Shown here one piece after another: positions 14,580 through 46,704 of a DNA stretch of 64,000 bases (position 1 is its first letter; each line of letters starts with the position of its first letter). The notes below the pieces were generated by a model. The model saw only the letters and a program-made list of their open reading frames with translations. It was not told the DNA's origin and did no database searches. Source of the DNA: Monocercomonoides exilis PA203 (taxonomy: Eukaryota; Protista; Preaxostyla); assembly GCA_001643675.2 (NCBI GenBank), contig LSRY02000049.1, forward strand, positions 310,001-374,000. The letters are read 5' to 3'. Position numbers and translations under genes: made by a program.

Positions 14580-17500
14580 CTAATTTGATCCAGAGCAAGA
14601 TGCAAGGAGTCGAAGCTCAGAAACATTCACATTCGAATCTTCATCGTAGGTGATTGCATCCGAAACCGTGAATATCACAGCTCCAGCCGGAAAATGCTGG
14701 AAAAACTCCCGCTTCATCCCAATCAGCGTCGGCCTGGCTTTCTTGTCCTCTGAAAGCGCTGCCAGGATCACTTCGTCATACGACGAGCTCGCCTTCGAGC
14801 AGTTCGGCCTCTCCCCATTCAGAATCTTCTGCCCCGCCACCACTGCCTCATACTCCCCAAACGGGATCTTCAGCGTCACACACTCCCACAGCATCATCCC
14901 AATCGAAAACACAACTGCCTTCTTTTTTGCTCCCATCTTCTTGTTTACCATCAGCTCAGGCGCCTTCCACCTCAGGCACTCCATTTTGAAATCATCCTCA
15001 TCCTCAAATGCCGATGAGGGCAGAGAGTCTCTGTCATCATCATCATCATCACTTGTTGATGTGACAACAGTTGACGAAGAGATGGAGGATGAATTTGAGT
15101 CTGAAGAAGAGCAGTCGGAGTGGAGAGCAATGCAGATGACCATGTGCTCTGAGAACAGCACGATGTGCGGACTCAGATTGTCCAAGGACTGAAGTGGATT
15201 TTCCATTTCGTCAAATGAATGAAGAGCACCATTCGCCACCCAGAATAACACCTGTGCAGCTGTCTGCTCCCTCTCCTTCAATGATCCAATTGCCATTTCT
15301 TTCTTCTCATTCTTTCCATGAAGCAGCATAAACAATGAATCCCTCAGATCCACAATCAGCTTCTCATGGGGAGACGAGCAGGCCATTGCATCCACCAGAT
15401 TCGACATTGATGATGTGGTTGGACATAGATCCTCCCCTCGAACAAAAGTTGAATCAGAATCGGTCGTATCTGTGGATGAAGTGGATGAGATGGATGGTGA
15501 TGATGTTCGCTTTCTCGAAACATCATCTTCTTCTTCCTCATCAACCTTCTCCAGCATCCATTGAGGGATCTTGTCTGAATCTCTTCCCAGAATGTATTCA
15601 GTAGAGCCACTCTCACTCAATAGGTGCTCTGATGATTCTGAATGCTGCAGACTTTTCGCATACACCCTTTTCTTGATCCTCTCTTCGTTCTTCTTCTCTT
15701 CCTCTTTCTCTGCTCTCCTCCACTGCTCTTCTGGTGACATCTCCATCGTCACCATCTCAAATGCCTTCGGATCTTTTCTGATGTTATCATTCACTATTTC
15801 TCTCAGATCTTTGTTCTCATCCTTTGCCTTTTTCCATCGTATTGTTATGAGAATGGACACAACAAGAACTATCAAGAACAAAACAATCAAAATAATAATA
15901 ACTATAAGAGACCAGGACTTATCATCTTTATTTCCTTGTAAAATCTTTTCATCTCCACCTGAATTTTGATCAGTCTTGTTCTTGATAGCAAAAGCGGCTG
16001 TTGAGAATGCAACATTCTGATATCCACAAAGAATCGCAACCAGCACTTCTGTTTCGTCAGAGGCCGATGCAACTGCAGACAGCGGCACTTCCCCAACAAC
16101 TGCGGCCTCAGACAAATACCCTTCCGACCTGAACTCGTATTTGTCGATCACATCCACATCCCCAACCCTCGATGTCATCTGGAAGGACAGGTTGCACGGC
16201 AGAAGAAGAGCGCCCTTGAAAGTCAGCTTCACTTCGCCTCCTGACTCTTCTGCCAAAACCGAGTGCAACTCTGGAATAAAGAACGGAGACTGCCTTTCTG
16301 CTGCAATTCCCGAAAGCTCGCACCCTTCGCTCAGAATCCACATCGATGTGCCTGGGAGCCACCCATCCCCGCCCTTCAAGCTCGCAATCTCCACCACCCC
16401 CGATTCTCCACACATCATGTTTCTTCGCACTGACGAGTAATTGCGGATCATCGGGTTGTTCCCGCTGAACTTGCCTTCTGCCACTGAAATGTTCGCTCGA
16501 AGCACCGAAACACCCCCGCTTGGCGAGTTCGATATTGTCGAGTCGCTCATGGTGGCTCTGCTGTCTTCGAAGCTCATCAGCGACCCGTTCCATCTGCACA
16601 CCTCGCACCCCCCATCCCTTCCCTGCGCCTCTGCTTTGCATTCCTCTCGCACGCCTCCTCCTCCTCCTCCTCCGCTGCCTTCGACCAAGCAGTTCTTCAT
16701 CCAAACCTCTTCGCATCCTGTGAACGATGCAGCACTTCCAAGCCCAGCAGCACCCGAAGAGCACCCAGAAACTGTGCAGTTGGTCATCTCCAGCCGACAC
16801 CCCTTTGAGCGGCACTCGAAGCACGATGGAGAGTCCAATGAAGTGATGTTCGCCAGTTCAACAAGCGCAAATCCAAATTCTGATGTTGATGAAGATGCGC
16901 TGTTTTCTTTCGCACGAGCTGCAGAGGCATCGTTGCCCATCTCAAACAAGCTCCCGCTCTCCACAATGCTGTTCGAGGCACCCAGCTTTTCAGCTGACCC
17001 GCTTGCCCCCTTCAGCATGAATGCGCTCTTGGCTGTGCTGACTCTTTCCACCTCAACCCCCCGCACCAGCAGCCTTCCCTCTTCCCACCCCATGATTCTC
17101 GTGCAGTGCAAGTCCCTCACTTTCGTCTCTTCCACAGACACCTCGCTCCCACACCCGCAAATGAGCACAGGCGACTCTGAAGCACTCCCTGCCTCGCCAC
17201 AGAACTCGCACAGCACAAACGAGCTGCGCCCCGACACAGCCCTGAACAGCACCCCATGCTGCCAGCTGCAATCAGCAGGCACAACAAAGCACAGCCCTTC
17301 AAACGCGGTGTTGCTGCCAACACTCACAATCCACTCGCGCGTCTTGCTCTGCACTGCCCTGAACGCCACCTTCGCCTTCTCCCGCGAAATCGACTTCATC
17401 TCCATCCCCCCAATCTCGCACTCCCTCTCGATCTCGCTCTCCTCATCCACCAGCAGCCTCGACCCAAAGTCCATGATCACATGCTCCAGCCCGCACCCCA

Positions 17501-20500
17501 CAGACACACACGGCTCCTCCACCTTCCCGCACTGCCTCCCCTTCGTCCCGTTCTTCTCCTCCGCCGACGACACAACGATCGTGCTCTGCTGGTAGATCGT
17601 CACATACTCAATCAGATCCACCGGCACATAGTTCTCCTCATCGATCCCGTAGATCGCATCAAACCGGTTGTACACCTCCGGCCGCAGATCCAGCACAAAC
17701 TGCGTCTCGTTGATCTGCTCTGCAATCCGCCTGCACTCCACAAATATGTCGCGCCCCTTCCACCCCCCGTTCCCTCTGAACAGGCACCCCTTGAACACAA
17801 AGTCCAGCGCCCCCTGCCCCACCGCCTTCAGATACACCCCGCCTCCCCTCCCAGCTGTGGGAGAGCACCCACAGTTCGTGATTTCGCTGTTGTTCATCTC
17901 GTACCGGCCGCTCGCCCCCAGCACATACGCCATCACCCCTCCTGCCTCTGACATCTCCGACCGGCACACATCAAATACACTGCTGTTGATCTTCATCGCC
18001 AGCACGCTTGCCGATGTGTCTGTGAACACACTCGACCCGTTGTTCGACGATGTCACTCGCCGGAACGAACTCCCGTTTATCACCACACTCGGCATTTCGT
18101 TTCCCCTTGCACCTTCCCTTTCCCCAGCTCCATCCGCATAGCTCACAATCCCCCCGTTCGCTGTCACATTCGCCAGATCCACCCCTTCCATCGCACAGCT
18201 GCACCCGCCCCACACCTCCACCAGCCCCCTTTCGAAGTTCAGCCCTGCCGCCCCGAAGTCAGTCAGCACCAGCGCCCCGCCATGCACAGCAACAAACTTC
18301 ACGTCTGAGAAGTGCGCTGAGCTGCTTGCTGCCAACGAGCATCCTGCAACACCCAGCAACCCACTGTGGCTCCAAATCACAACCCCCGACGCATCCTCCA
18401 GCGTTCCATCCAGGAACAGATCAACCCCTGTGAACGAGAGGCTCCACCAATTCGCAAACAGCCCCTCGCTCAATCCTGCACCCCCAGGCTTCTGCAGAAC
18501 AAGCAACGCTCTTGCTGCTTCTCCTGACCCTGAAGGCGCTGCTCCAACCGAGCAGTTCGACAGATCCCATGCATCTACCACTCCCAAAGAGCCGGAAAGA
18601 TGCACTTTCTTTGCCTCTGCATGCTCCTCCAGATGGCTCAGCCCCTTCCACAATGTTTGGCACGGATCCTCCTCTGACCCACACCGCATCACATCGCTTC
18701 CTGCACTCGAAACAAAAATCGTGCTCGACAACAGCCCAACCAGGAAGCGGAACAGGTCTGTGTCCTCAAACTGGCTGTCTGTACCAGCAAACACATTCCC
18801 ATCGCTGCTCAGCCCCGAATAGTCAAACTCGAATGCTGCGCCTGTGATAGTCGTGTTCAGCGCCTTTGCCTTGACAAAAAGACTCTTCCCAACAAAGGCC
18901 TTGTTGTTGCCGAACGTCGCATCCTTGAACTTCAGCGGCTGGGCTGCATCAGTCAGCGCACAGTCGACAAACAGGAACCCTCCTCTCCCCGACACTTCTG
19001 AGCACTTGCACGAGTCCATCACACACCCCTCCACAAGCAGCGCCTGCCCTGCTGACAGATGGCATGCCACACACCCGCCTTCCACGCTGCTCGCTGCTTC
19101 CACTCCCCTGAACTGGCAGCGGGTGGCCGAAAACCCTGAAGCAATCGCCAGCGGAACTGCTCCAAACATCTGCGGCTCAAACGAACACAAGCTCATCCAA
19201 ACTGTCCCTCCATTCGAATGGATCAGATAATACGCGCACTCTGCATTCACAGAAGAAGAAGAAGAAGAAGAATGAGAAGGAGAAGAAGAAACAAAAGAGA
19301 AGGAACAGTCGGAGAGAGTCAGCCCCTCTTCTTGTGAAGAGGCAGACAGAAGCAGCCCAGCTTGCCCAGAAGTGAACAAAAGAGGCAGAGAAAATCCAAT
19401 CCGCTCAAGCCTCAGATTCCCCTTGTTCAGCAAGACAGCCTCAGACACCCCACCCAAAATGGCTGCGCAAACACCAACCGTGCATTTGCTCGCTTCGTCT
19501 GCAGATGCCACAGAAAAGGATGTCAGCTCGTGCCAATGGTCAACCAACGCTTCCGACTTGATTGTCAGGCTCTTGTGCACAGCATCAGCCTGGATGTTCC
19601 TCAGCCCTCTCCACAGCGAACAGCACGGGTAGCTCTCACTTCCGCACCCAACCATGTCATATCCGCTTGGAGAGACAGCAATCGCAGGCGCCTCATACTG
19701 CACCAGAAACAGATACAGATCCTGTGCAGCCTCTCTGAAGTGGTTCCGGTCGCACCCCATCATGTCTGCTGTCCTCCCCCCCTCGGCTGTTGTCAGCGCC
19801 ATTGCAAACTTCGACACATCCACAGTGGCATTCAGGCTGTCGCACACAATGAATACATCCTGCCCGAACGCTGCCTCATTCCCTCCAAATCTTGTGTTCT
19901 CAAACAGATAGTCGCTGCCTGATCCTTCGCAGAAGCAAAGATACACCCCGCCACCTTTCCCGCCTGCTGCCCTTGTCCCGCTATTTCTGATGGTGCTGTT
20001 CGCAACTATTACTTTCCCTCCTGCAGTCAGGCAACACCTCAGAAACCCTCCTTCCCCTGCCTCTGTCTTGCATTCCTCAACCACACTGCTCCCTCTCACT
20101 TCCACCTTCTCACAATCCGTAATGTTCACAAGAGGCTCATTCCCTTCCATCCGCGTCCATTCTCCCTCCTCAACCACCAAGCTCCCTCCCCTCATCCACA
20201 CAATCCCCCCTCCCCCCGAAAACGAGAGATCCAACATCCTCGTTTTTGTCATCTGCACCGCTCCCTCGCTCCCCTTCACAATCCACATGTCTGTGGCGCT
20301 CCTTCCTGCCCAGCTTCCTCCAAATGCACACTCGTCCACAAACAGCTTTCCCCCTTCGATGCGTATCATCTGCCCAACTGAAGACACTCCTGGCAGGCCG
20401 AACTGCAGATGCTCCAGCATCAGCGATACTGAACTATCCCTCATCACCAGCACAAATCCCCCGTTTCTTCCCACCTCAAACAACGACCCACCCGCCGAAG

Positions 20501-23500
20501 ACTCTCCCCGGATCGTGACTGACTGCCCGTTCCGATCCAGCAACGCATTCAATGTGCACGAGTCAACAATGTGAACTGTCGTCTGATCTGTCCGCATCTT
20601 CCCAAACCCAAACATCAGATCCCCACATGGTTCCACATCATCTCCACACATCAAGTCGCTGCTCCCACCACTCTTCACGTACACAATGTTGATTTTCGGA
20701 GGGAACAGATAGTGCAGCACAGAAACATTGATCCCTGGCTCCACCTCCCTGTCCACCACCCATTTGTTCTCCTCCTCCTCCTCCTTCCTCGCAGACCCTT
20801 CCCACCGCTGGCTCGTGATCATGTCTCGCGGGTTCTTGCACACCAGATACACATCCCTCCCCACCTCCGCCTTGTTCCCCCCAAACACAACCTGCTTCAT
20901 CGAGTATTCTACCCCGCTCTCCCCCAGCCTCAGATACATGCCCCCGCCTGCTCCCCCGCTTTCGTCCACACTGCACCCCTTCACTGTGTTGTTCCCAAAT
21001 GCCAGTGTTCCGCTATTCTCCACCTCCATCCACACCCCGCCTCCCTCCATCCTCCCTGCCTCTCTGCAAACACACCCCTCAAACGTGGTGTTCTGCACGC
21101 TTGTCGCTTTCCCTCCTCCTGCTCTCCCCAAAACCGCTCCTCCACTCCCCTTCTGCCTCTCGATCCTCGCCAGCGTCGTGCTCCTCACACTCAGCGTTGC
21201 TCCCCCCAACACCTCAATCACACTGCTTGCCTCTTCGCTCGTTCCGTCAACCACTGAGTTGCTTATCTCCAGCGAAGCACCCTCTGACACCTTCACCACA
21301 GAATTCGTCCACTCCATCGTGATGTCTGTCCAGTTCAGCTCCTCGCAAATGCAGCTCGATCCGCTCCCTCTTATCTCAAATGCTGCCCGCGTGCTGAACG
21401 TCAGCCCGTTCAGCTCCAGCTTCTGCATCTTCAGACACCCTTTCACCACCACAGCCAGCGCCATTCCAAATGTGCCTCCCTCTGTCCCAAATCCACACTC
21501 TGAAAGCACCAGCTCCATGTCGTTGCATCGAAGCACAGATTCTATGTGCACATTCATCCTCTGTGGCACCACGAAGCACATCCCACAGAACGAACAGTCT
21601 TTGCTCGAACAAATGATGCTCTCCCCTGCACCCCCGATGTCTTCGCTTATCCTCACTTGCATCCCCGCCTGCTCTGCCGAAAAGGCAATTGGCTGCTCAT
21701 CAATCGCAAGCACATGGTCAATCACAAACGATCCTGCCAGGCACACTTCCCCTGCTCCGCTCCCAAACCGAAGCGCAAGCACATACTCGATGGTGGAGCA
21801 GGGGGTGCTCGGGTGTCCACATCCAGTGAAATTGTGGCCTCCTGCCCCTGCCACATGCCCAGGCGGTGTGAACGTGCGGAGATACGAAACCAGCGGAATC
21901 ACAAACCCCTCATTCGTTGTTGACCCCTCATACCCTTCTGCCAGCCCTGCCTCCACTGCCCCATCCTCAAGCTCAATCAGGTCTTTCCGCACAATCCCTG
22001 AGAGATCGTCTCCCCTCACAAATATGTTCGATCCATGCACTCCCACACACCCCGAGAACACTGCTCCGCGGATTTCAACATCCGGCACAGCCCGTTCCTC
22101 AGCCTCCAAATACACACCCCCGCCAAGCCCGCCTGATCCTCCCCCCTGCCTGCGAGGTGCAGCCTGCAAACGAACTTCCACTTCCCTCGTCCCTTGTTCG
22201 CACCATCCGCAACGAAGACCCTCCCTGCATCCTCACCGCAACCCCACCCCCATTCCCACTCCTCGAGCTGCACCCGCTCACCTCCCCTCCTTCAATCTCC
22301 ACCCTTTTCCCTGTCCCAACCACCCCTTCAATCCCTCCCCCGCTTCCACTTTGCCTTCCTGCACCACACACACTCGTGTTCACCACACTCACCATGCACT
22401 CCGAAGAAAACCTGATCGCTGCTTTCGAGCTCAGCCACAAAGGCCCCATTCTCGTCCTTTCGATGCGTGTGCTCCCACCCTCCAGCACAATCAGCGACTC
22501 CTCAAGCGCATGTTCTGCTGTGTTTGTCCCATCCACACAGATGCTGCATCCTTCCAGAACCAGCGTTCCTGTCGATGTCAGCCTGAAAAGCGAGCAGGCC
22601 TTCGACGATCTGGTTGTGTCGTGCAAAAAGTCAAACGAGGCGACTTTCAGCGATCCTGTTGAGACAGAAAACAGCGACCCCGAAGAAATGGACGAAGCAA
22701 CGGTCACTGTTCCGCCTCCTGTGTTTCCAAACTCGATCCTGGCCGAATCCACAGAATAGCTGCCTTCAACATATGTCGACGGATCAACCCAGATGGCAAT
22801 CGGCGTGCTTTTCGAAAGGTCGACCACGCTCTTCGTAAACGAGATCGTCTTGCACTTCCTCTCGTTCAGCCCGCATGCCTTGTGGTCAATCCCTTCCTCT
22901 CCATTCACTTTTATCTCCTCAAAGAACCCAGACACCATCCATCCGCTCACATCGCTTGAATCATTCACAATCCTCCAAGCTCTGGCTGTCATTGTTCGGC
23001 ATTCAACAAACGATTCATTTGTTATTATCTGCACCCATTTATCCAAAATGCAGATGTCATGGCCTCCGTTTTCTGCACTGTTGTTTTCAAAATAGCAATA
23101 TTTGATGAATGAAGGGAGAATCGTTAAATTTCCATTATCGTTTGAGAACAGTATTGCTCCCCCTTTTTGGTTTGACGAACACGATGAAAATGAGCAATCT
23201 GTTATCAAATTTGACCCTGCATCACCAAACCACAACGCCCCACCTCCATAATAATTAATGGTGGCTGAATCAGAACAATTTTGTAAAATACACGAAAATA
23301 GTTTAAGTTGGGACCCTCTATTAACATGTGCTGCTCCTCCATCACGACCTGCAGTGGAATTTTCAAAGATGCATTTTTCAACAGTTGCATTGTTTGATAA
23401 ATCAATGCCTATTGATCCTCCACATGAACTATACGAATTGTTCAAAAAATCGGTACAAGAGATCATTGAATGCTTTACTGAAAAGAAGCAAATTGCTCCA

Positions 23501-24465
23501 CACAAGCAATTCGTATAAGAGCATTCGGTAATTGTCACGTTTGTTGCATCTTTCACATAAAGTGCATAATTTCCACTTACAGTAAATAAGCAGTCTTCAA
23601 ATAGAATTGTTTCGTTTGTGGTAAAATTTTGTGGATCTGTGTAAGTGTGAGTATACGAGGCTGGGTAATAGTGGGAAAACGAACAGTTCTGTGCTGCAAA
23701 TCTCGAAAGCGAATGCAATCCATTTGTTATTCCTCCATCAAATGGTGCTGACACTTCTTCAAAAACACAACTCTGCATCATTGTCTGCACTGCTGTTGAA
23801 TAACTGGTGCTGGCAGGTTCGGTATTTGAAGTGACATTGCAGAAGCTGCACACGTCCAAAAATACACTTCGCATCATGCAGCTTCCCAGAAGAGGCGCTG
23901 TTGGTGAAAACGTGAAGGAAGAGAACGAACACTGGGATGCAAAAATGAAACTCTGAATGTCTGATGCCTCGCGAGCATGCGCGGATGCAACGAAGGTTGG
24001 GATGTGATTTGCGACTGGCGAGAGTGAAAGACTCATGTTCCACAGCAAGAACTCTCCACCAGCAGAGCAAAACAACGACTGTGCAGCAATTGCTGACGGC
24101 TCGATGATCGAAGAACAAACACGCAGAATAGAGTCTTGCAGCAGTGTTGCTATCCCTTCAGGTGCTGCTGCTCTCATAGTCAGATGCGCCAATTCCACGC
24201 TTGAATTCCTCATCTCGAAGGATGAAAGGAGCTTCGAATGCTCATTGGAATGGGAGCATTCGCACAATATTGGGGTTGTTGCTTTGTGCTTGCTCAAGCA
24301 ATAAAACATGCTCGGCCTTTCGCTTGCAACTGTTTTCTGCGGTGCTTCGCAGCTGCCGCATCCCAGTGGCCCGACTGATTTTCCCTGTGGAACCTCCAAC
24401 GCAGAATAAAAAGCCAGCAGCTGCACGACAAATGCAAAGCGAAGTGCCATTTTCGGTTGAAGCAT
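14580..24465 (-). CDS. Giant intronless type-I receptor-like protein (~3,290 aa if repaired): signal peptide, pectin-lyase/PMP-like beta-helix modules, TM, TKL-derived pseudokinase tail; single frameshift at ~22141-22146
   Basis: ORFs 22099-24465 and 14580-22181 join by deleting one base of a C6 run. Recurrent GG(A/G)(I/V)Y, FxxN.A..G.D and CGxxxxPC motifs. TM LIVIIILIVLFLIVLVVSILITI. Kinase C-lobe motifs LRWKAPEL, VFSIGMMLWEC..IPF, GERP and RPT. Confidence 0.85.
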
Positions 24466-28086: not shown

Positions 28087-28187
28087 TTAAAGAATCAAAG
28101 CAAAGTCAATTATTTGATCTTGCCCAATATACATCTCTATTATTGATCAAAAATTCCATGATAAAAATAGATAACTCTTCTGTTTTG

Positions 28188-31374: not shown

Positions 31375-31478
31375 AAATTATAAACGTCTTTCTGAAAACA
31401 ATGGGACTGCTTAAATAAGATCTTTAGAACACCAAACTTTTTATAGGAAAAACCTCAGCAAGGCCTTATAGAATTGTC

Positions 31479-32051: not shown

Positions 32052-32448
32052 ATCTTCTGAAGTCATAGGCGAGACTTCATGGTTGTGAGTTGTTTTCTTC
32101 TTTCAATTCACGATTTCATGACACAGCCTTGCACAACTCAATGATCATGATATCTTCGTTAATAGACATTTTTGTTTTTTAAATTTTCCTCTTCTTTATT
32201 GTGAAGGTGATTGTTTCAAAATGGTCTAACGTCATTTCAGGGAAATGAAGAGAAAATCACTCCTTACGTTCAAATAAAGTTTGGAGGAAGAAAAACAGTA
32301 AAAATGTTTTAATAAATTTTCATAATTTTGAAAGAAATTTTCTTGTATAAAAATTCAATTATCCTCAAAGCTATTTGATATATCGCAAATTTTGTGGAAA
32401 TTAGAATTGAGAATATTAATACCATAAATTATTTTTTCCGTTTTAAAA

Positions 32449-33605: not shown

Positions 33606-36600
33606 TTAATTTCCATTACCAGCAAATCCACCAATAGCAGATGATGATGAAGACGAAGACGATATTGGTGAAACAGGCAATGGAGACAACGAAAACGAAT
33701 GAGACGGCCCCAGCAATGAAAGATTTGGATTGGCCATTCCATATTGAGAAGGAGGAACACCAACAGATTGAATAGGATATGATTCAACAGCAAGCGGAAG
33801 CTGTTGATTCAGCTGCTGCTGTGGCTGCTGCATCATACCCGGGCGTATCACAATCTGCCCAGGCTGCATCATCCCGTTGTCGAGAAGCGGCTGCATCTCG
33901 ATTGAGCGCCCGTCTCCTCCAAAAGTGCCGTCTGCCCCCATCTCCATGTCCATTCCCATCATCATCATCCCTGGCGCATACCCCATCAGCTCTCCATCTA
34001 CAAAATGCAGCTCCACTTCGTTCTCGTTCGCCTTCTTCTTCTTTGCTGCCCTGTCCTTTGCGTGGCACAGATGGCACACCAAAAACACTGATGTGATGAT
34101 CAAGCAGATTGCTGCACTGCCAGCAAGGAAAAAGAAGGCTGCTCTTTTGAGAACAATATCCATCAATTTTCCGCTGTCAAATGAAAACAAAAACCAGACT
34201 GAATCTGTGTTGCTCCACGATGTGCCATCGTTTGTTAGCGACACGCGGAAGTGCCCCGAACAAGCTAAAAAAGAAAGGAGTTAATGTTATCGTCAAAATT
34301 ACAAATGATATAATAATTGAGAGAAAAATGAAGATAATATCATATCAGCATTAAATGAAAAAATAAAAATAATAAAATAAAAAATAATAATAAATTCAAG
34401 TTAGAATTACACACATTGCATAGCTTCATCTGACACTTCGCATTCAATTGTGTTTAATTTATCGGTGGCTTTCAGATATTCAACTTCATCATTGTCAACG
34501 GAATCCAGCTTAACTCCGTTGATCAGCCTGCTGTTGGAAGGGTTGTTATAGCACTCCAAACGGCACAAGAGCCGATAAGGAAGCACAGCAGTTGCATGGA
34601 GGTGCATCGAAGAATGTGCAGTCACACTCAGCGCCGGGTGAGGAACAGTGTCCATCAGCAAAGGCACAGCTGTGAGCGCCGACGAGTAACTTGCCTGGCC
34701 TTCCTCGTCAGTAAGCGAAGTTACAGTGCATGTTCCGTCTTCGAAGAAAAACCACGCATACCGCTCGGTTTTCTCTTCATCCAAGAAATCGCCGAAGTCC
34801 ACGCGGTCTCCAGAAATAGTCCCAGAGTTGGCGCACTTCACGTTCAGCGGCACATCCGCAGCAATGCCAGGCGTCATCATGTTGTTCCTCACAGTGCAGT
34901 TCTCAAAAGCGAGAGAGCCTCCAATCAATTGAACAGCTCCGTCAGAGACGGAATTGAGCAGGCTGCTGTTCGAAATTTCGACAAGCGCATTGGCGAAACG
35001 GAGAAGGCCCATGTTTGACATCGGCCGAACACGTGTCTCTGTTGTTCGAAGAGGAACAAGTGAAGATGGTGTCAAAGACGAAATTGAATGAGATGAAGAG
35101 GGAGAAGACGAATGATGTGAGTCTGAATTATCTTGAGATGTCAAAAGAAACTTAAACAGTCTTTTTGCTCTTCCTTTAATCTCTTCTTTGAGCAAGTATC
35201 TTTCTTCATTAAACGAGTTCTGTTTCTTCTCATTCTCTTGGTGAACTTCCAATGCACGCTTGGTCAGCCGTGACAGTCGAGTAACACGAGACAAACGCAA
35301 ATGACGCAGCATCGACGAAGCAACACGTTTGCTCCAATTTTCTCTTTGCTTTGATTTCTGATGAAATATTGTGTTGTTTGGTGTGCGCATAGATTTAGCC
35401 AAAAGCGGGTTTTCATTTTTTGAATTTGACGCTCTTGTCAGTCTGTTGTGTGTGAGCTCACTGGAGATTTCATCCAAATTGAATTGCAGTTTTGAATATA
35501 CTGTCAACTGACGGTTGCTTTGGTACGATGGAAAAGCAGGCATATTTAAAGACAAATTCTTCATCAAGACATTTTCCTCCTTTTGGATAGCTTTCTTTGT
35601 TTTCAAACTTTTATTTGACTTCACATCTTGCTTGTGTATGAACTGGATGCCTTCTTCATCAATAACCGCATTATTGCTGCTCGACAACTCATTTGAAGCT
35701 GACTGTGGCATGTCCATTCCAGTTATGTTCGAATTTTCAATTTTTACTAAAGATAACTCTGCATAAATAAGATTAACAGCTGAATCAATCCCTCGAAATG
35801 CACTGTTGGCCACACGAATATTCACCCCAGTTGCATGCAATGCACTTGCAAGTGATGCTTCATTGCCGTAAAACGTGCAGCTATCAATCAAGTTCTTGAA
35901 TTGAGAGAAAGGAACTGGGTCTCGTATCGAGGCTGCAGTTATGTAAATCGCTCCGCCAAGCGAACCCGTCACTGAAATTTCAGTTAAAGTTGCAGGAGAC
36001 AAAGAAGGAAGTTCTGTCGAATTAGAAGATGAAGACGCTGAAGATGAATGAGCTGAGGAATGATATGAAGGGCGCTGATTAAGCTCACCCAACGCCAAGC
36101 ATTGGTCAAATGTTGAATGAGAAAATTCGCATCCCGATGAAATGTCATCTCTCACCACAGCAAACACAGCCCCACCACACGAGGCAGAACACTTTACAAA
36201 TCTGCATCGAGTGAAAACAACCGTACTTGAATCAGCTTCAATGTGAATGCACTTTCCGCTGAAAACATTTGGGCCAAGTTGGCAGTTGGTGAAATTGCAC
36301 GAATCGATTGTCATTCGAAAGTCGCTTGGAGAATCCGAGTGGTCAATGAGCATCAGTGGAGCAGGCGTCTGTCTTTCAATGTCTGTGAATGTGCAAGATA
36401 AAAGCTTGTTAATGTAATCTGTTGGATCTTGGCAATCCACATCATGAACTGAAATAATTGTCCTTTCGCAAGAAGGAAGATTCTTAAAGACACACATCCA
36501 GCAGAATATGGGGCCTTGGGCAGAAATCATGCACTTATTATCACCTTCATTCGATAGTGTGTTGCTATTGTTTGTTTGAGACGAATCATTTCCACTGGGA

Positions 36601-38660
36601 TTTTCATTGAGTTGATTGTGCGTACGTGAAATAGCTTCTGTTGAGGCTGATGAAGCTGGTTGAGCAGCCACACAAACAGCAACTTCTTTCATATACAGAA
36701 AAGTCCGCGAATGCACAAACACTAATCCTGGGGTTGATGCAGAGGCAGTTGAGTTGTACAGGAATTTGATTAAAGAAAGCTGCACTCCATTAAAATCGAA
36801 GAGATATTCGTCTGTAGTGCTGTCTTGTGTGCCTGTGCAATTCAGTGTTGTTATTCTGTCAGCCTGTGCTCCTTCTCCGCATCCAACGCCTATGATTGAG
36901 ATGTTAAATGACAGTCCATCTATCGCAATTGGACCAGATTGAATGGCAGACGCTGCCAAAGTGATTGTTCCAATGCCGAGGCTGGCTGTAACAAGAGTGT
37001 TGATCGAATCGGCAAGGTTTGTTGCGTCACTAATAATGTCAGATACCGAATTGAAAGAATAGCCGGTCAGCATACGATTCACTTGGGAAAAAAAAACAAT
37101 GAAGAAGTGACGAATAACTATAAAAACAATAAGCATACGATTTTGAGAAGTTGGAGGAGAAGTTTGAATGGGAGTATTAAGGCAAGTTGTGATACAAGAA
37201 GTGAAAGGAAAGCTGGAAGCTTCAGGAAATGGTACACCCATCCAAAAGATATCACTTTCAGTTTTACTTTCTGATGAAAATTTCATTATTCAGAAATAAA
37301 CGTGAAAAATAATGCATTCAATGCAAAATTTGAGAAAAACGAAATAGAAAAGTACTAACAAAAAGATATCTATTTTCTCTTTTCTTTCAAATTTTTCATA
37401 TTTTTTGTTTCAATGCAAAAATTATTCTTTCATCAGAAAATTTTTCACTTCAGTACACTTTTTATTCCTATATTAACTCATATGGACAAACCCATTGGAT
37501 GCTTAAATATGCAGTTAGTCAACGAAGAGCCTGATTCCAAATTTGCATCAAGATCAAAGCGTAACATCTCGCAATTCACATCATATGAATCCAAAAAAGT
37601 GACTCCAGACATAACGCATTTCACAGATGTTGCATTTGCATTTTGAAAACTTTTACTTAAAGGAAAACTCAAAGCCGTAGACGAAGAAGTGCTTGCTTCT
37701 TCGCTTCTTAGAAACAGCGAAGCTCCTTCTTCAGCTTTTGGAGATGTAAATTGAACATTATCTAAAAGCAAAATAAATGGTGATGTGATAGAAATATACT
37801 CCAAAGAAATATAAAGTGATCCTCCTTTCTGACTTGTGCATTTTTCAAAATAAGAGTCATTGATATTAACATTTGCTCCATTAAAAATGCAATGACTATT
37901 TAAGAAGATTGTTCCCTCCTTATCTGTATTAATATTTGTGAATTTGCATTCTGTTAATTGAATGGAACATGCATCTCCCATTGTTCCTCTTAGAATGACT
38001 CCACCTCCGTTATTTTTTGTAATATTTGAAGTGTTGAAATTTGTTAATGAAATACTAGTAATTGCATTACTAAATACAATGATTCCGCTAAAGCTTGGAT
38101 CTTCCACAAATGACAGTGGTTTACTAATTTCAAAACCGTTGACTGTCAAGGATCCGGACGTAACGGAAAATACTTTTCCAGTCAAAGGTCCTTCAACTTG
38201 CGATTCAACTAAAACATCGTTGTATGTAGCATCATTGCTAATTGCAACAAGAATATCATTCTCAGCCATAAATTCTAGCGTTGCGGAGTTGATATAGGAA
38301 ATTGCATTTTCAAAATGAAAAATGGGTAAATTTGCTCTCTCTGAATTCAATATTGAACCTTTCTTAAAAAAGACCTTAACGGTTCCTTTCACTATAAACA
38401 GAATTGCAATGTTAATTTTTTGTTAAAAAATAATTTTTCAAACAATTAAAAATATCTTTTGGAATCGAATAATTTCCATGGCCAACAAAAATCTCAATAA
38501 TTTTCGAAGAATCAAATTTGGCTTTGCAAATAGGATAAAACGAAGAAAATGGAAATTCCTCTGTTCCAGAATTTCCATTTGATCCGTTTTTGTTTATCCA
38601 AAAAGATTTACATGAAATTGAAAAAAAATACAAATGAAAAATAAAAAATAGAGTATTCAT
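33606..38660 (-). CDS. Type-I membrane surface protein (~1,520 aa, 5 exons) with beta-helix/PMP-like repeats, Ig/IPT-like juxtamembrane motif and low-complexity tail; no kinase domain
   Basis: Phase-consistent exons 38660-38444, 38391-37492, 37270-37139, 37081-34415 and 34264-33606 total 1525 codons. Signal peptide MNTLFFIFHLYFFSISC, GSNGNSGTEEFPF, GGSLY/GGAVF/GGAIY plus FYGN, VSLTNDGTSWS, and TM AAFFFLAGSAAICLIITSVFLV. Confidence 0.75.
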
Positions 38661-39006
38661 CTATAATATAATATTTCGGATCGAACTATTTAAATTAATA
38701 TTTTTTTTTTATATAGTTTTTTATTATTCTTCTCAATCATAGCAATCGCATTAGTATATTCACGTGAGTTAAATGAGACATTTTTAGTATTTTTCAATTG
38801 TCATCCAAAATGATCTTAAAATTGAGAAAAGATTTAAAAAGAATGTGAGCAACCTTCTCGTCTGCTTGTTTTAAAATTTTTGTATTATTTATAATCTTTT
38901 GAAATTTTTTGTGAATATTTGATTGAGTTGTTATGAAATTTTCATCATTAATTTATGTTGGGTCAAAATCATATTTTCTTTTCTTTCTTTTTTTCGATTT
39001 GAGTGA

Positions 39007-42000
39007 ATGCCAATTTTCTTTTATGTTATTTTTTTATCTTCTAATATTCCTTTTGTGTCTGCACAAATGCCACAGGAAAAATTCAAAGACGAACATCATT
39101 TTTTACACTCTTCAAAAGAATTCGTGTCTGGCTGTTATTTAAAAGCTGATGCAGAAATCAACGAATTATATTTGGAAAAACACTCATTTTTCATTGCGAA
39201 AAATATTGTGATGAAGAACGACTTTAGTTGTGAAATCCAATCAGAGTACCAAATAATAAATACTTCAATTTGCATGTACCAACTTGTTCTTCGGCAGAAA
39301 GAGAGCTGTTATTTGGTTTCATCAAAGTCAAACTCTTCGCTTCAAATATATTCATGTTTGCTGAAGTTTGCAGGAAGCGAAAAGAATGGTTTGTTCTTTG
39401 GAAGTCGTGGTTCGCTTCTGTTTTGGAATATTTCGCTTCATTTATCACAGAACGTTAATATAGCACCAAGCCTTGTTGAAGTTCCATCCAAAAGCATGGA
39501 CCGAATTGATGAAGTTGATGCAGAAGTTCACAATTCAGAATTCTCATCCTTCGTTCAAGGATCATCACCATTTTTGCAAATATCGCCTTTGACTTCCATC
39601 ACAATCAGCGAATGCTGCTTTTTTAATGTTTCACAGAGAAAAGTCAATGCGAAATCTTGCCCATCTTCTTCTTATTTGAATCCAGATAAAAGATGTGAAT
39701 TGAATTGTATGAATTGCATTGCTGTTCAGAATCCATATTTGGGATGTATCGTTGACGGAGCAACAAGTGCATTCATCTGTTGCAATTCGTCGTTTTTGAG
39801 CTGTGAAGCAGTTACAACGAGAACTAATTTCAGCACAGGATCCAAAGAGTTCAACGACACAACGTTCATGGTTAAAAGTGCAGAAGAATTGGACGGAGGT
39901 GCAATTTATCTAATAGGAGATGCAACACTGACGACAAAAAGATGCTCATTTGAAAGCTGTTCTCTCGCTCACTCTAATGCCAGAGCAGGGGCAGTCGGAA
40001 CCGATGGAGAAGGATCGTGGCTATGTGAAAACACTTCCTTTCAAAATTGCACAGTTACTTATGCTGCAGCAGCCTTTGACTTAATGGGCAAAGAATCTTT
40101 TGAGATATCTTTGAGCAATTTAAGCCATTGCAGTTCAGGAGATGGACTCGGAGGAGGAGAGATTCGTAGATGCTTAACTTGCTTAATCACAAATTGCATT
40201 TTTCAATGCAACGAAGCAAAAAGAAGATACGCAGGCGCTTTAAACTGCTATATTATGGAACACAATTTTTCTGTGGTTTCATGTTTGTTCAAATCAAACA
40301 GAGCCTGCACAAATGGAGGGGCGATCAGATTTGATCACAGTCAAGTTTACAGTATCACTGCAACGCTATCTGACTGCATTTTTATTAATAATTCAGCTGG
40401 AGAAGGAAATGATATTTACGCAAATATTAGTTGGAACGGAAAATTGAATCTTGTTGCATCAAGGTTGTTTTCCACAAGCAATCAACCCAGAACGACTTTT
40501 GCCTGGGCAACTGCAGAGGAGACATCACATTATGTTCTTGATCCACCGATTATTCAAGATAAAATCATTATTGCACCAAATGGTGAAGACTGGGATAATT
40601 GCGGGCGAAGTGACTTTGATGAATTCAATTGTCTGACAATGAAAAAAGGAATTGAAAGAGCCAAAATAGAATCGATGAGTTTTGAGATAAAAGAAGGACT
40701 GTTTCCTTCAGGCCAAATTGATATTGGATCTTCAAATGTGATAGGAAGCGGATCTGGAATGTTGCTAACGAGTATAAAATCAGATATAAAAAATGAAGAA
40801 GAAGCACTATTTCGAATAAGCACAGGAAAAATGGAAGCATCAGAAATGAAGTTTATTCACGATGGTTCGAATGAATACTGCAGAAGTTCATCATTGTTTC
40901 TGATGAGCGAAAGTTCTGGGATTCTTGTTCTTTCTTCTTGCAAAATAACTTGCGAAACTCCATCTGCAGAACAGTTCTTTTCTAAGCCTCTTATAAGTTC
41001 AGAGAAAGGTGAAGTGACTCTTGACTTGTGCAATATTGAGGGATCCCAGTCTTTGAATACATTCATCGCAAAACAAAGCGGAGACCTTGTTGTGAATGAC
41101 ACGTGTATCACAACAATAAATCGTCAGACAGGAAATGGTGGTGCAATGGAAGTGGAATTGGCAGATGAAGTTGGATTCATCGTAAAGAATGTGTCGTTGA
41201 AGCAATGCAAGGTAGGAACGACAAATGAAAAGGGCGGGGGAATCTATTTGGTTCTGTGTGAAAATTCGACAAGAAACTATCAATTGGATTCAGTGAATGT
41301 GTCAGGGAATGATGCAAAATGGGGAAAAGATGTGTTTGTTCAATGTGTTGATTTGAACCAATCAGTGACCACAAGTCGGATTGCGAATATAAAAAATGAC
41401 GATGGAGACAAATTGGATTTCTTTGGGATTGACAGTTCTATGTTTCTGGAGGCTCCTGTGAATTTGTCCTATTTTTTCTTACAAAGGCAATCTTTACAAA
41501 TAGAAATAAGTCAATCTGGAAAGGATATTTCTGGGTGCGGAGATGAGGTGTTTCCTTGCAATTCGTTCTGGAAAGGATTCAAAAACTTGGCAATTGATGT
41601 CACAAACGAAAAAAAGGAATTAAGGATTTATGGATCAACTTTAGTCCAGGATCAGTTCATTTTTTCTTGTTTGATGATAAGCTCTAAACAGGATGAAAAA
41701 AATGCGAAATTAACGTTCAACTCGGTTGTGGTGAACGGAAGTTCAGAAGTCATGCTTTTGAATGAGAATAATCTTGAGTTTGACAGAATCTGCTTCAACA
41801 TTCCTTCAAGTTTTTCTGTCTCAATATCTTCTCTAATTTCTTCCGCAGACAAGGAAAACTCGAACCTTGTTTTGAAGAACTGCTCATTTGAAAACAAAAC
41901 CAAGGATAACATCACATTTTCTCTTCTTCTTGTTCTTGGAGGAACTCTTCGAGTCGAACAATGCACAGTGTCTCAAATGGCTTTTGGTTCAAGCCCTGCG

Positions 42001-45000
42001 ATAATATCTGATAAAGCACATGCTGATCTCGGAATGTTTTCTTTTTCTTCAGTGAAACTCACAAGTTGCACGCTAATCTCAATTGTTTCTGAAGAGTCAA
42101 GCAACAATCATGCAAAGGGAAATGAGGAAGCTCAATCACTAACATTGAGTTCCTGTACCTTTGAAGGGATTACCTCTTCCGGTTCAAATATGGCTTGTAT
42201 TTTATCATCAACAATTAATTCTCCAATTTTAATTAATCAATGCTCATTTCTGACTATTTCATCAAAAGGAAGCAATGAGGGAGGAGCTTTGGGAATATCC
42301 CTTCAAGAGAAAGGCGCACTCACAGTTAACAAAACAGAAACAAGCAGATGCGAATGTGAAAGTGATGCATCGGGAAGAGGTGGGTTCCTTTTTCTGAACT
42401 GTATAGATTATGCAAATATGATAAAATTTGAGGATTTGCATTTTATCAATAACATGGCAGCGATTGGTAAAGACATGTTCATTGTTTGTAGCGATCTCAC
42501 AGAATTAGTCAATTCAACTTCATTCAGCTTTGCCATGGATATTGAACAATCCGAACGAGTAAATTCACTGATAGGTTTTGATAGGACTCATTTTGCTAAT
42601 GCTGAAGATCTCTTCATATTTATCACAGGGTATTTCAATGAAACAATTCACGTCGACGGGAAAAGAGGAATAAATAACATCGCCTGTGGAAAGCTAAACT
42701 TTCCATGTAATTCGTTGAACTTTGGATTGAATAGAGCACAGGGAAAGGGAACAAAGAACCTTCTGATATCTGGGGGAAGCTCACTTCTTGAAGAAGTGTC
42801 GATGGATAATGTTGCTGTTAAATCGGAGCAAGAAAACTCATCATCAAGATTGGAAGTGAACGAGACATTGGCTAATTCTGTTGGAGTTGCAATATCTGCA
42901 TATCTGGCATCATTTTCTTCAATCATTTTTTCATTGCCGCCAATTTTCACCAATTTGCAGAAAGCTTTTATGGAAACATTGGACAGTGAATCGTGCTTGA
43001 GCATTTCTGAATGTTCATTCAATCTCCAAAGCGAGGGAATATTGTCTTTCATTCTTTTGTCAGTCAAAAATGGAGATTTAAATCTTTATTCATGCTCAAT
43101 TGAAATACTTCAAATATCAAAGCCTTTTATTGAATTTCATCAGTCTTCAGATTCAAAAGGTGGGTCATTGACAATGGAACATTGCTTATTTGGCAGTGTA
43201 ACTCAAAGCTCCAACAGCGCCTGTATATTGATAACAACGATGGTCAATGATGCAAATGCTATGCTGTCAAATTCATCATTTGCTTCGTGTGCAGCTGATG
43301 CAAGTGATTGCGGAGGAGCATTGCATGTGAAGATGGAGGAGGGAGGAAGATTTGAGATATACAATACAAAGATTTCTTCATGCTCTGCCATTGCAGGAAA
43401 AGGAGGTGGAGTGTTTTTGAATTGCCTTTCAAAGAAAAACAAGACGATTCCATTCCATTTCAAAAACATAACGTTCTCAAACAACAAGGCGAGGGTAGGA
43501 AGAGACGTGTTTGTGAAGTGCTTTTCAATTTCCAAACAAATCAGCGAAGAACAATTTGATTTAGACTTTCGTGAGCCACCGTATGACAGGTTTAATGCGA
43601 TCTGGGGTGTGGATGAAACGCTTCCAATTGAAGATGTGGATCTCATTCCTCTTATTGTTGTGTACCGCAGCGAGCTGATTTTTGTGTGTGGAGTGAATGA
43701 TGAGGGGAATGATGCGAAGCCATGTGGGAACTCAACAACACCATGCAAATCCTTGAGTTATGGATTGTCTCATATTATATCTTCAGCATACAGTCAGCTT
43801 CTGATAGATCGAGAATGTGACATATCACAAACTTGCACTGCAAACAGTGTGACAGTTAAGAGTCTGAATCCAGCAACGCATGCTGTTGTTCATCTGAGAA
43901 CGGAAATTTCAGAGTCACAAAGGTCAGAGTGTATTTTGGAAAGTGTTGAGACTGTGAAATTTGAATGTGTTTCATTTTTATTTCAACATGGATTTGTCTC
44001 AACTCTCAAAAGCATATTTACTCAAACGAATGGATCATTTGTTGTCGCGTCCTGTTTGTTTTCCTGTGCCGATAATAGCATTTGCCTCAGCCAGTCGTTG
44101 TTTACGATTGAGTCAGGATCTTTTGATTTGAGCAGAACAAGCGTGAAGCATATAAACGCTTCTCAGGAGTTGTTTGAGTTGAGGAGTTCTTGTTTCGCTC
44201 AGCTTCAATCTGTTGAGTTTGGCGAATTGACATTAGGAAGCTCACTGATTGATGCTTGTGAGGGCTCAAATCTTATCATTAAAGAAATAAATACTTCAGA
44301 TATCACAATTGAAAATAGTTCTCTGATTTCTGTGGAAGAACGAAGCATTTCGAAAATGAACGAGGAGAATCTTGAAAGTTCTATTATGATAATTCACTCG
44401 AATGTCTCTGGGATCAAACGAAGGACACAAGGTGCATGCTCGCTGTCGTTTCCTTCATCTTTTCCTACTCTTTGTCAAATCTCAAACTGCTCATTTTCAA
44501 ATCATACATCATCTTCAGCAAATGCACAGATTCTTGAACTGTCAAATAGCATATATATTGAATCATCGATTTTAGAAGGATATCAAAAGGATATTGCTTC
44601 CATTGGTAATTCAGCAATTGAAGATGTGTGCCATTGGAATGGGTCATTAATTTATCTCGCAAGCTGCACCAGCTATATGAAAGATACAAAAGTTGCAAAC
44701 TCATCAAAGGGAGGAATTTCTGTTTCAAAGGGCAGGTTGACAATAGAAATGGGGATGTTTGAGGGAAATAATCCATCAGTTGAACGATATCCTTCAGCGA
44801 GAAGAAATATTATTTGTGATGAAGGGGGAGTTGTGGACGTGATGAGCTTAAAAGGAGGAGATGGCTTGCTTCCGAACTCATCGATGTGGATTTTGAATGA
44901 GGGTTGTGAAATGGAAGGAGTTGCTTTGGAAAGAACGTCTGTGCTGTTTATTCCTCATTTGGAGAGAGTTGAGCAAGAAGAAGCAGGAGCAGAAATAAAA

Positions 45001-46704
45001 TTGAAGTTCATTGGGCATTCACTGATGCCCTGTCACTTGCAGTTCCGGGTTACAACAATACTAAATGAAGAGAAATCGTTGCACACCAACAAGTTCAAAG
45101 ATAGTGAATATGTGAACGAATCTGAAATTGTCACAAGTATCCAACCATCTTTGGTCAAAGATGCTCCAAGTGAAGCTGAGGTGAGCGTATGTATCTTGTT
45201 TGGTGACAAAGCGCGACCTTCGTCAACGCGATCATTCGTACTGAAGAACAAAAGCGACCCTCAATCAGACGCAAATGGAAAGCTGGCCAAAGAAGGAAGC
45301 GGAGCTGTTTCATCGTGGGCTTTAATTATCATTGTCATTTTCGTAATTTTGTTTTTGATTGTTCTTATTGCGTCTATTATTCTGGCTGTTCGATGGAGAA
45401 GTGCAAAAGAAGAAGCGAAAAAATACAAAGAGATTGTTGATGATAACATCAGAAAAGATCCGAAGGCATTTGAGATGGTGACAATGGAGATGTCGCCTGA
45501 GGAGCAGTGGAGGAGAGCAGAAAGGGAGGCAGAGAAGAAGAATGAAGATAACATAAAAAAAAGAGTGAATGAGAAAAGCTTGGGACATTCGGAGTCTGAG
45601 GAGTATTTGTTGAGTGAGTGCGGATCGACTGAATACATTTTGGGCAGAGATTCAGACAAGATCCCTCAATGGATGCTGGAGAAGGTTGAAGAAGAAGAGA
45701 TTCGAAAGAGATCACCTTCACCATCCATTTCATCCACTTCCACCACTTCAACAACCGATTCAGATTCAACTTTTGTTCGTGGAGAGGATCTGTGCCCAAC
45801 AACCTCATCGATGTCAAACTTGGTGGATGCAATGGCGTGCTCATCACCGCATGAGAAGCTGATTGTGGACTTGAGGGATTCACTGTTCCTGTTATTGCAT
45901 GGAAGGAACGAGAAGAAGGAGATGGCGATAGGAACATTGACTGAGAGAGAGCACACAGCTGCACAGGTGTTATTCTGGGTGGCGAATGGTGCTCTTCATT
46001 CATTTGACGAAATGGAAAATCCACTTCAGTCCTTGGACAATCTGAGTCCGCACATCGTGCTGTTCTCGGAGCACATGGTTATTTGTATTGTGATGCATTC
46101 CGACTGCTCTTCATCATCAGACGATTCGGACACCTCATCCATCTCTCATTCAACTGTTGTTACATCTTCCTCTGATAATTCATTGATGAGCGAGAGATTC
46201 ACAAAATCACCTCCTCCTTCATCCGCCTTTGAGGACGAGGACTACAACTTGAAGGAGAGCTTAAGATGGAAAGCTCCGGAGCTGATGTTCAATAAGACGA
46301 TGACGGCGACAAATAGTTCGGTTGCATTCTCGATTGGGATGATGTTGTGGGAGTGCTTGAGCCTGGAAATCCCGTTTGGAGAATACGAAGCAGAGATTGC
46401 AGGAAAGAAGATTACGAACGGAGAAAGGCCAAGCATTTGCATAATAGTTAAATCCCGCTTTTATAAGTTGATTAAACAGTGCTTTGCACAACTGCCCAAT
46501 GACAGGCCTTCGTTGGCTCGCATTAAAAGGGAATTTTTCAATAGTTTTCCAGCCGATGCAGTTATTCTCACAATCTCAGATGCCATTGACTTAGAGAACG
46601 AAAGCTGCAACGGAAAAGATTCGAAGGGAGAAAGTGAAGCTGCTTTAAGTAACGAGATTGTGAATGTTGAGCTTATAAACGGAAAATGTTCGATACAAAA
46701 GTAA
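39007..46704 (+). CDS. Giant intronless type-I receptor-like protein (2,565 aa) with beta-helix modules and TKL-derived pseudokinase tail; paralogue of 14580-24465
   Basis: Uninterrupted ORF with a hydrophobic N-terminus, GGAI/FxxN/CGxxxxPC repeats, TM ALIIIVIFVILFLIVLIASIILAV, and tail KDPKAFEMVTMEMSPEEQWRRAE...LRWKAPEL...FSIGMMLWECL..IPF. Confidence 0.9.
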   Translation: MPIFFYVIFLSSNIPFVSAQMPQEKFKDEHHFLHSSKEFVSGCYLKADAEINELYLEKHSFFIAKNIVMKNDFSCEIQSEYQIINTSICMYQLVLRQKESCYLVSSKSNSSLQIYSCLLKFAGSEKNGLFFGSRGSLLFWNISLHLSQNVNIAPSLVEVPSKSMDRIDEVDAEVHNSEFSSFVQGSSPFLQISPLTSITISECCFFNVSQRKVNAKSCPSSSYLNPDKRCELNCMNCIAVQNPYLGCIVDGATSAFICCNSSFLSCEAVTTRTNFSTGSKEFNDTTFMVKSAEELDGGAIYLIGDATLTTKRCSFESCSLAHSNARAGAVGTDGEGSWLCENTSFQNCTVTYAAAAFDLMGKESFEISLSNLSHCSSGDGLGGGEIRRCLTCLITNCIFQCNEAKRRYAGALNCYIMEHNFSVVSCLFKSNRACTNGGAIRFDHSQVYSITATLSDCIFINNSAGEGNDIYANISWNGKLNLVASRLFSTSNQPRTTFAWATAEETSHYVLDPPIIQDKIIIAPNGEDWDNCGRSDFDEFNCLTMKKGIERAKIESMSFEIKEGLFPSGQIDIGSSNVIGSGSGMLLTSIKSDIKNEEEALFRISTGKMEASEMKFIHDGSNEYCRSSSLFLMSESSGILVLSSCKITCETPSAEQFFSKPLISSEKGEVTLDLCNIEGSQSLNTFIAKQSGDLVVNDTCITTINRQTGNGGAMEVELADEVGFIVKNVSLKQCKVGTTNEKGGGIYLVLCENSTRNYQLDSVNVSGNDAKWGKDVFVQCVDLNQSVTTSRIANIKNDDGDKLDFFGIDSSMFLEAPVNLSYFFLQRQSLQIEISQSGKDISGCGDEVFPCNSFWKGFKNLAIDVTNEKKELRIYGSTLVQDQFIFSCLMISSKQDEKNAKLTFNSVVVNGSSEVMLLNENNLEFDRICFNIPSSFSVSISSLISSADKENSNLVLKNCSFENKTKDNITFSLLLVLGGTLRVEQCTVSQMAFGSSPAIISDKAHADLGMFSFSSVKLTSCTLISIVSEESSNNHAKGNEEAQSLTLSSCTFEGITSSGSNMACILSSTINSPILINQCSFLTISSKGSNEGGALGISLQEKGALTVNKTETSRCECESDASGRGGFLFLNCIDYANMIKFEDLHFINNMAAIGKDMFIVCSDLTELVNSTSFSFAMDIEQSERVNSLIGFDRTHFANAEDLFIFITGYFNETIHVDGKRGINNIACGKLNFPCNSLNFGLNRAQGKGTKNLLISGGSSLLEEVSMDNVAVKSEQENSSSRLEVNETLANSVGVAISAYLASFSSIIFSLPPIFTNLQKAFMETLDSESCLSISECSFNLQSEGILSFILLSVKNGDLNLYSCSIEILQISKPFIEFHQSSDSKGGSLTMEHCLFGSVTQSSNSACILITTMVNDANAMLSNSSFASCAADASDCGGALHVKMEEGGRFEIYNTKISSCSAIAGKGGGVFLNCLSKKNKTIPFHFKNITFSNNKARVGRDVFVKCFSISKQISEEQFDLDFREPPYDRFNAIWGVDETLPIEDVDLIPLIVVYRSELIFVCGVNDEGNDAKPCGNSTTPCKSLSYGLSHIISSAYSQLLIDRECDISQTCTANSVTVKSLNPATHAVVHLRTEISESQRSECILESVETVKFECVSFLFQHGFVSTLKSIFTQTNGSFVVASCLFSCADNSICLSQSLFTIESGSFDLSRTSVKHINASQELFELRSSCFAQLQSVEFGELTLGSSLIDACEGSNLIIKEINTSDITIENSSLISVEERSISKMNEENLESSIMIIHSNVSGIKRRTQGACSLSFPSSFPTLCQISNCSFSNHTSSSANAQILELSNSIYIESSILEGYQKDIASIGNSAIEDVCHWNGSLIYLASCTSYMKDTKVANSSKGGISVSKGRLTIEMGMFEGNNPSVERYPSARRNIICDEGGVVDVMSLKGGDGLLPNSSMWILNEGCEMEGVALERTSVLFIPHLERVEQEEAGAEIKLKFIGHSLMPCHLQFRVTTILNEEKSLHTNKFKDSEYVNESEIVTSIQPSLVKDAPSEAEVSVCILFGDKARPSSTRSFVLKNKSDPQSDANGKLAKEGSGAVSSWALIIIVIFVILFLIVLIASIILAVRWRSAKEEAKKYKEIVDDNIRKDPKAFEMVTMEMSPEEQWRRAEREAEKKNEDNIKKRVNEKSLGHSESEEYLLSECGSTEYILGRDSDKIPQWMLEKVEEEEIRKRSPSPSISSTSTTSTTDSDSTFVRGEDLCPTTSSMSNLVDAMACSSPHEKLIVDLRDSLFLLLHGRNEKKEMAIGTLTEREHTAAQVLFWVANGALHSFDEMENPLQSLDNLSPHIVLFSEHMVICIVMHSDCSSSSDDSDTSSISHSTVVTSSSDNSLMSERFTKSPPPSSAFEDEDYNLKESLRWKAPELMFNKTMTATNSSVAFSIGMMLWECLSLEIPFGEYEAEIAGKKITNGERPSICIIVKSRFYKLIKQCFAQLPNDRPSLARIKREFFNSFPADAVILTISDAIDLENESCNGKDSKGESEAALSNEIVNVELINGKCSIQK

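Follow-up and report, generated by a model that had tools for sequence, protein, structure and literature searches.

The genome of Monocercomonoides exilis PA203, a model eukaryote without mitochondria, contains a 64,000-nt stretch (contig LSRY02000049.1, positions 310,001 to 374,000; hereafter the window) in which two giant paralogous genes, A and B, encode nearly the same predicted cytoplasmic tail behind ectodomains that share little sequence. This raises the question of what holds the tail constant: selection on the individual copies, exchange of DNA between them, or both. The first-pass annotation of this DNA had taken both genes to be open from end to end and had explained their tails as one constant signalling cassette, homogenised by gene conversion or shuffling. 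The two genes are built as follows.

39007-46704, plus strand: gene A, an uninterrupted ORF of 2565 codons predicted to encode a giant type-I membrane protein
39007-39066, plus strand: hydrophobic N-terminus of A, likely a signal peptide, judging from the sequence
45316-45390, plus strand: hydrophobic stretch of A, the predicted transmembrane (TM) helix
14580-22181, minus strand: main ORF of gene B, 2533 codons, comprising a GC-rich ectodomain, the TM helix and the conserved tail
22099-24465, minus strand: N-terminal ORF of gene B, 788 codons in another frame, with a Beta_helix match
22141-22146, minus strand: homopolymer G6 (coding strand) where the frames of B overlap, the likely site of the frame break

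The end-to-end reading holds for A. Its public gene model is the same ORF, without introns, from codon 149 on; this model begins at 39451 and leaves out 39007-39450 including the hydrophobic N-terminus, and the true start probably lies upstream of the annotated one. Contigs from RNA libraries have 0 differences to the unique parts of the A ectodomain, which suggests that A is transcribed, with the proviso that these are bulk libraries only and that their contigs may contain DNA. For B the end-to-end reading fails, as 14580-24465 is not one frame: the main and the N-terminal ORF overlap, and the frame breaks somewhere in 22102-22181. The upstream ORF is homologous to the N-terminal part of A (tblastn). 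Because the relatives of B keep intact ORFs of 3223-3323 codons, the frame break is either recent or an assembly error. The ectodomain of B (window 16000-22000) has 56% GC and an excess of G on the coding strand (skew ~0.35-0.45); the GC content of its flanks is 33-42%.

Genome-wide searches were run on the 82.3-Mb, 101-contig ONT assembly. The invariant TMEMSPE motif, written as a degenerate pattern, matched at least 817 tail copies, with 0 matches for the reversed control, and of the 1399 first-look candidates obtained with the A tail as query, 95 were scored as matches of 71-85% identity. In the databases at least 534 proteins are related to the two genes, and those among the 120 listed are all M. 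exilis MONOS_ proteins, named either uncharacterized or "putative protein tyrosine and serine/threonine kinase". Both the motif count and the protein count agree with the earlier proposal of a large family rather than a few copies. Against PK_Tyr_Ser-Thr (PF07714), A scores 40.6 bits (cut-off 23.1), which assigns it to the TKL family. B has only a PF00069 match of 22.5 bits, under the cut-off of 31.7, yet it aligns with the family along the whole tail. Both genes belong to the largest family of M. exilis, which has been published only under the name "protein tyrosine kinases": Karnkowska et al. 2019 (PMC6759080) give it 332 members, 320 of them TKL, and Treitli et al. 2021 (PMC8767320) describe its overlap with unclassified repeats; the papers, too, rank it as the largest of the genome. 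These are the same genes as those described here. The portions of the two papers at hand speak of 332 members classed as kinases, whereas the present analysis counts at least 817 tail copies in which only the remnant of a kinase C-lobe is detectable. Relative to those portions it adds that a beta-helix ectodomain forms most of each protein, and it documents mosaic exchange of the tails. A literature search on the architecture or evolution of the family found no paper.

The ectodomain is a chain of modules of ~350-390 aa each, one of which was modelled.

42649-43806, plus strand: single module of the A ectodomain (~386 aa), bounded by CG..PC motifs and predicted by AF2 to be a right-handed parallel beta-helix

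The AF2 model of this module has a pLDDT of 88.4 and a pTM of 0.85. In the ESM Atlas it is similar (TM 0.55-0.76) to prokaryotic surface proteins bearing Beta_helix or Chlam_PMP domains, and a Foldseek search against the PDB gave weak matches (E >= 5e-3), all of them to beta-helix proteins (lyases, tailspikes). Moreover, PF13229 exceeds its cut-off in both ORFs of B. As modelled, the ectodomain modules belong to the right-handed parallel beta-helix proteins. The Chlam_PMP repeat itself (PF02415) had no match at E <= 0.01 in A or B and is carried by the structural neighbours only. Prokaryotic PbH1 and Chlamydia Pmp-type surface proteins have the beta-helix fold in common with the M. exilis modules, along with GGx[IV]Y/F and FxxN-like motifs. 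The M. exilis modules, however, are eukaryotic and chained, are followed by a TM helix instead of an autotransporter barrel, and are fused to a kinase remnant.

The ectodomains of A and B are only ~15-45% identical in amino acid sequence and differ in codon style (GC3 ~0.33 in A, ~0.65 in B), just as had been noted at the outset, while the tail has a GC3 of ~0.5 in both. For a wider comparison, a codon alignment was made of 30 copies, namely 29 loci found with the tail query plus B, with ~470 membrane-proximal ectodomain codons each; these copies are the best tail matches to A, so that the sample is non-random and favours A-like tails. Across them, GC3 spans 0.25-0.61 in the ectodomain and 0.44-0.56 in the cassette that follows the TM helix, and GC-biased conversion is a possible cause of the gene-specific base composition. 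Pairwise dN/dS of the ectodomain ranges from 0.11 to 0.69 in 15 close pairs and never exceeds 1. The ectodomain is under weaker constraint than the tail, without gene-wide positive selection.

Within the tail, three segments are referred to below.

45442-46107, plus strand: tail cassette core of A, ~222 codons, not kinase-like by sequence
15110-15788, minus strand: tail cassette core of B, delimited from the alignment of 30 copies
46243-46533, plus strand: kinase C-lobe remnant of A, from the APE motif to alpha-I, matching positions 162-257 of 258 of the PF07714 profile only

Just past the TM helix, A and B are 77-93% identical at the amino acid level along ~240 aa, in good agreement with the near-identity over ~230 aa first described, and more than 90% of the cassette columns are conserved in the 30 copies. 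The designation of this tail as "signalling" is conjectural, as the kinase subdomains detected in it extend only from APE to alpha-I. In single-sequence and profile searches of the PDB, only tail residues ~296-397 (again APE to alpha-I) align. The matches of this C-lobe part are ILK and TKL kinases, with the pseudokinase ILK scoring best. Neither a Gly-rich loop nor the VAIK Lys, the HRD Asp or DFG was detected in the Pfam and PDB searches, and the tail thus does not qualify as an active kinase; it appears to end in a catalytically dead remnant of a kinase C-lobe. Since the AF2 model of the tail is poor (pLDDT 38), the apparent loss of the N-lobe is read from sequence searches. A feature search of the tail in the ESM Atlas returned generic kinase clusters only.

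The constancy of the tail holds for its protein more than for its DNA. In the cassette core, the median pS is 0.58 and the median pN 0.075, with a pS of 0.72 in the ectodomain; for the pair A-B the core has a dS of 0.82 and a dN of 0.06, and dS of the tail is ~0.8-1.3 overall. The cassette dN/dS has a median of 0.070 (IQR 0.058-0.081; 432 pairs). Tail DNA of different copies has a median identity of 0.80, and the genome-wide DNA matches closest to the A tail are 84% identical. Because dN/dS is ~0.07 at a dS of ~1 and the DNA is only ~80% identical, the constancy of the tail protein is due mainly to strong purifying selection, and the notion of a tail homogenised by conversion has to be given up. 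Concerted evolution proper, in which frequent conversion would keep one constant tail throughout the family, should leave tail synonymous divergence near zero, very different from the median pS of 0.58 and the A-B dS of 0.82. The lower pS of the cassette relative to the ectodomain does speak for it, as do the uniform GC3 of the cassette, the frequent exchange described below, and codon identity at identical residues, which is 0.60 in the cassette vs 0.42 expected (ectodomain, 0.44 vs 0.40 expected). However, nothing in the genome exceeds 84% identity to the A tail, the low dN/dS at high dS means that replacements are removed by selection, and recent duplicates have often been made less alike by conversion; we therefore regard concerted evolution as unlikely. 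The codon identities fit a mild or partial long-term homogenisation, in which the pool of cassettes would be of somewhat lower age than the ectodomains, with site-specific synonymous constraint as the alternative.

A and B have three long perfect tracts in common, the third of which had been overlooked.

A 45646-45689 (plus strand) = B 15541-15584 (minus strand): 44-nt perfect tract in a largely family-wide conserved stretch
A 45440-45482 (plus strand) = B 15748-15790 (minus strand): 43-nt perfect tract in a largely family-wide conserved stretch
A 45955-46067 (plus strand) = B 15151-15263 (minus strand): 113-nt perfect tract, ascribed to pair-specific gene conversion

The first two tracts, on which the case for conversion had originally been built, are exact as given, but taken alone they lie within the family background: the longest perfect run in 400 distant pairs has a median of 32 nt and a 90th percentile of 45 nt, and other family copies match both tracts with one mismatch. 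Such runs, common in distant pairs and near-identical in other copies, are what plain purifying selection without any exchange would yield by chance at conserved codons, and the high dS of the tail (0.8-1.3) is likewise in its favour. The 113-nt tract, exclusive to A and B, does not fit this explanation. It is found at 100% identity only in these two genes genome-wide, with the next best match at 88%; in the 28 other sampled copies the same stretch has a median identity of 78%, and its permutation p is < 5e-5. In total, the A-B pair has three runs of at least 40 nt, compared with a mean of 0.3 per pair. Gene-conversion tracts, as had been proposed, do exist, evidenced by this pair-specific tract and by the clustering of matches under permutation. 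That the tract arose as an artefact of ONT polishing is unlikely, with 0 differences in the DNA runs of 2016 and 2022 and a word depth that exceeds the depth of the unique flanks ~2-4-fold.

The 30 copies extend this finding from one pair to the family. Of the three partitions, ectodomain, TM-tail cassette and C-lobe, none accepts the tree of another (AU p <= 2e-4 in all six comparisons, delta lnL 330-4091), on ectodomain alignments that are noisy at 20-30% identity. Ectodomain and tail have different histories, as the first-pass annotation had supposed, and mosaic pairs display the same. The loci L005 and L008, inverted relative to each other and separated by 40 kb, have a pS of 0.72 in their unrelated ectodomains vs 0.04 in the cassette, with ~900 nt at 100% identity, a pattern that is repeated by a cluster on contig C10. 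In A and its close relative L002, on the other hand, the cassette has a dS of ~1, the ectodomain 0.2-0.5 and the C-lobe 0.12, and several further recent duplicates, too, have diverged more in the cassette than in the ectodomain. As the cassettes of many recent duplicates outdiverge their ectodomains, exchange shuffles the cassettes and no single constant copy is kept. Clustered matches at p < 0.01 occur in 155 of the 435 pairs vs 4 expected, using a site permutation that assumes even rates along the sequence. Among pairs with unrelated ectodomains, the cassette pS is 0.46 for copies on the same contig vs 0.58 for copies on different contigs (Mann-Whitney p 6e-10, which is too small because the pairs are not independent), and all such pairs with a cassette pS <0.3 are 40-145 kb apart. 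On the 3' side the tracts end at alignment column ~965-970, where nucleotide identity in the family falls from 0.78 to 0.44. Incongruent adjacent segments, pair-specific identical tracts and exchange favoured between linked copies, the signature of ectopic gene conversion, are all present. Cassette swapping is pervasive and favours copies on the same contig; it has made the cassettes of unrelated genes alike and those of recent duplicates different. Plain selection had been expected to combine a tail dS as high as that of the ectodomain with congruent trees; the tail dS is high (~0.8-1.3), but the trees are incongruent. Together with the 900 nt at 100% identity in unrelated genes, the excess of cassette over ectodomain dS in recent duplicates and the tract exclusive to A and B, this makes selection without exchange very improbable.

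The reading that we prefer, with a probability of roughly 80%, combines a tail held by selection with ectopic conversion of TM-tail pieces in a family of giant beta-helix membrane proteins. Each protein would consist, by predicted topology, of a chain of beta-helix modules outside the cell, one TM helix and a cytoplasmic tail of ~330 aa containing the dead C-lobe remnant. Strong purifying selection (dN/dS ~0.07, dS ~1) is the main reason why the tail protein is constant. Ectopic gene conversion copies TM-tail pieces among paralogues, in tracts from ~113 nt (A-B) to ~1.3 kb, preferring copies on the same contig and finding its 3' limit at the collapse of family-wide DNA similarity. The outcome is a mosaic of separate genealogies for ectodomain, TM-tail cassette and extreme C-terminus, with a cassette pool that is far from homogenised. 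The ectodomains, under weaker constraint, probably drift in sequence and base composition, and conversion may be confined to the tail because this drift removes the homology that it needs.

As to function, M. exilis is bacterivorous (PMC12308965), and this way of life together with the architecture of the proteins points to putative surface receptors for binding or uptake, in which the tail may serve as a common docking scaffold and not as an enzyme. Two further proposals go beyond this. Firstly, the family could be a system of programmed variant expression, in which one or a few copies are active at once and the copying of cassettes switches the expressed receptor in the manner of antigenic variation. 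In favour of such a system are the size of the repertoire, whose outer parts vary while the tail is constant, and the many inverted partial copies beside full genes. However, none of the present tests speaks for exclusive or immune-like expression, neither an expression site nor a switch signal nor a dedicated machinery came to light, the tracts resemble ordinary conversion limited by homology, it is the constant tail that is exchanged and not the variable ectodomain, and pairwise ectodomain dN/dS stays below 1 where diversifying selection would raise it. M. exilis is moreover regarded as a commensal (PMC6759080), and we consider programmed switching hardly credible. Secondly, hundreds of beta-helix sensors on one dead-kinase docking tail might provide combinatorial recognition of prey bacteria or host surfaces, local tail conversion keeping every new sensor compatible with one and the same intracellular partner. 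This is a tentative and rather doubtful idea; if true, the recognition repertoire would be a protist counterpart of the expanded innate-immune receptor families, based on pseudokinases.

Variable ectodomains on a conserved cytoplasmic end are known from several protists. The VSPs of Giardia, the BspA/Pmp-like proteins of Trichomonas and the var genes (PfEMP1) of Plasmodium are large sets of surface proteins in which a single TM helix joins a variable ectodomain to a conserved cytoplasmic end. They diversify by ectopic recombination, and their tails are short or acidic and lack a kinase remnant; exclusive expression has been shown for VSP and var. In M. exilis, by contrast, the exchange that we see affects the constant tail, and this tail carries a kinase remnant. 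The transmembrane kinases of Entamoeba histolytica (EhTMK) include, like the M. exilis family, near-identical subfamilies and truncated copies, have ectodomains of Cys-rich repeats and in most cases retain a full kinase domain, whereas the M. exilis proteins have beta-helix ectodomains and a kinase remnant only. The EhTMK (e.g. PMC2880585) are likewise an expanded set of single-pass receptor-like kinases or pseudokinases, and E. histolytica, too, is a gut protist that is anaerobic and phagocytic. The family of M. exilis, its largest, may make up 5-8% of the genome by a rough estimate. If its members are non-catalytic beta-helix surface proteins whose tail is under selection and exchanged locally, the kinome count and the nature of the "unclassified repeats" will change, and new candidate genes for the recognition of prey or host become available. 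The family moreover provides a clean natural example of how the effects of selection and of gene conversion on one segment of a gene can be separated.

Some further observations concern inverted copies and the surroundings of the two genes. Two loci on contig C10 (L029 and L030; 1442638-1449788) form a near-perfect palindrome in tail-to-tail arrangement, with arms of ~2.8 kb at ~100% identity and a spacer of ~760 bp; a full-length family gene with an ORF of 2635 codons contributes its 3' end as one of the arms, and opposite it stands an inverted, truncated copy with an ORF of 838 codons. Many similar plus/minus pairs with identical scores occur among the genome matches and are either real or ONT fold-back artefacts. 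A partial inverted copy of the B ectodomain, 99% identical and with an open frame of 1452 codons, is located at 291673-294381 of the window's own contig (C46), ~32 kb from B and ~18 kb before the start of the window. Between A and B lie two more ORFs with related motifs.

34410-37286, minus strand: ORF of 959 codons
37481-38392, minus strand: ORF of 304 codons

The ORFs within 34407-38392 (minus strand) have beta-helix or Pmp-like motifs (PF13229 at 28 bits) and are without the TM-tail; they may belong to a gene of their own, interrupted by an intron, for a secreted beta-helix protein. Because phmmer gave no match to the family for 34410-37286 and 37481-38392, these two were not counted as members. 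In A itself, 31-mer words from window positions 45334-45924 have ~50-100 times the depth of the unique parts of the gene in the DNA runs, and exact words in this juxtamembrane region are therefore common to many copies. Such words, common to the juxtamembrane tails, probably explain why the family is masked by repeat finders.
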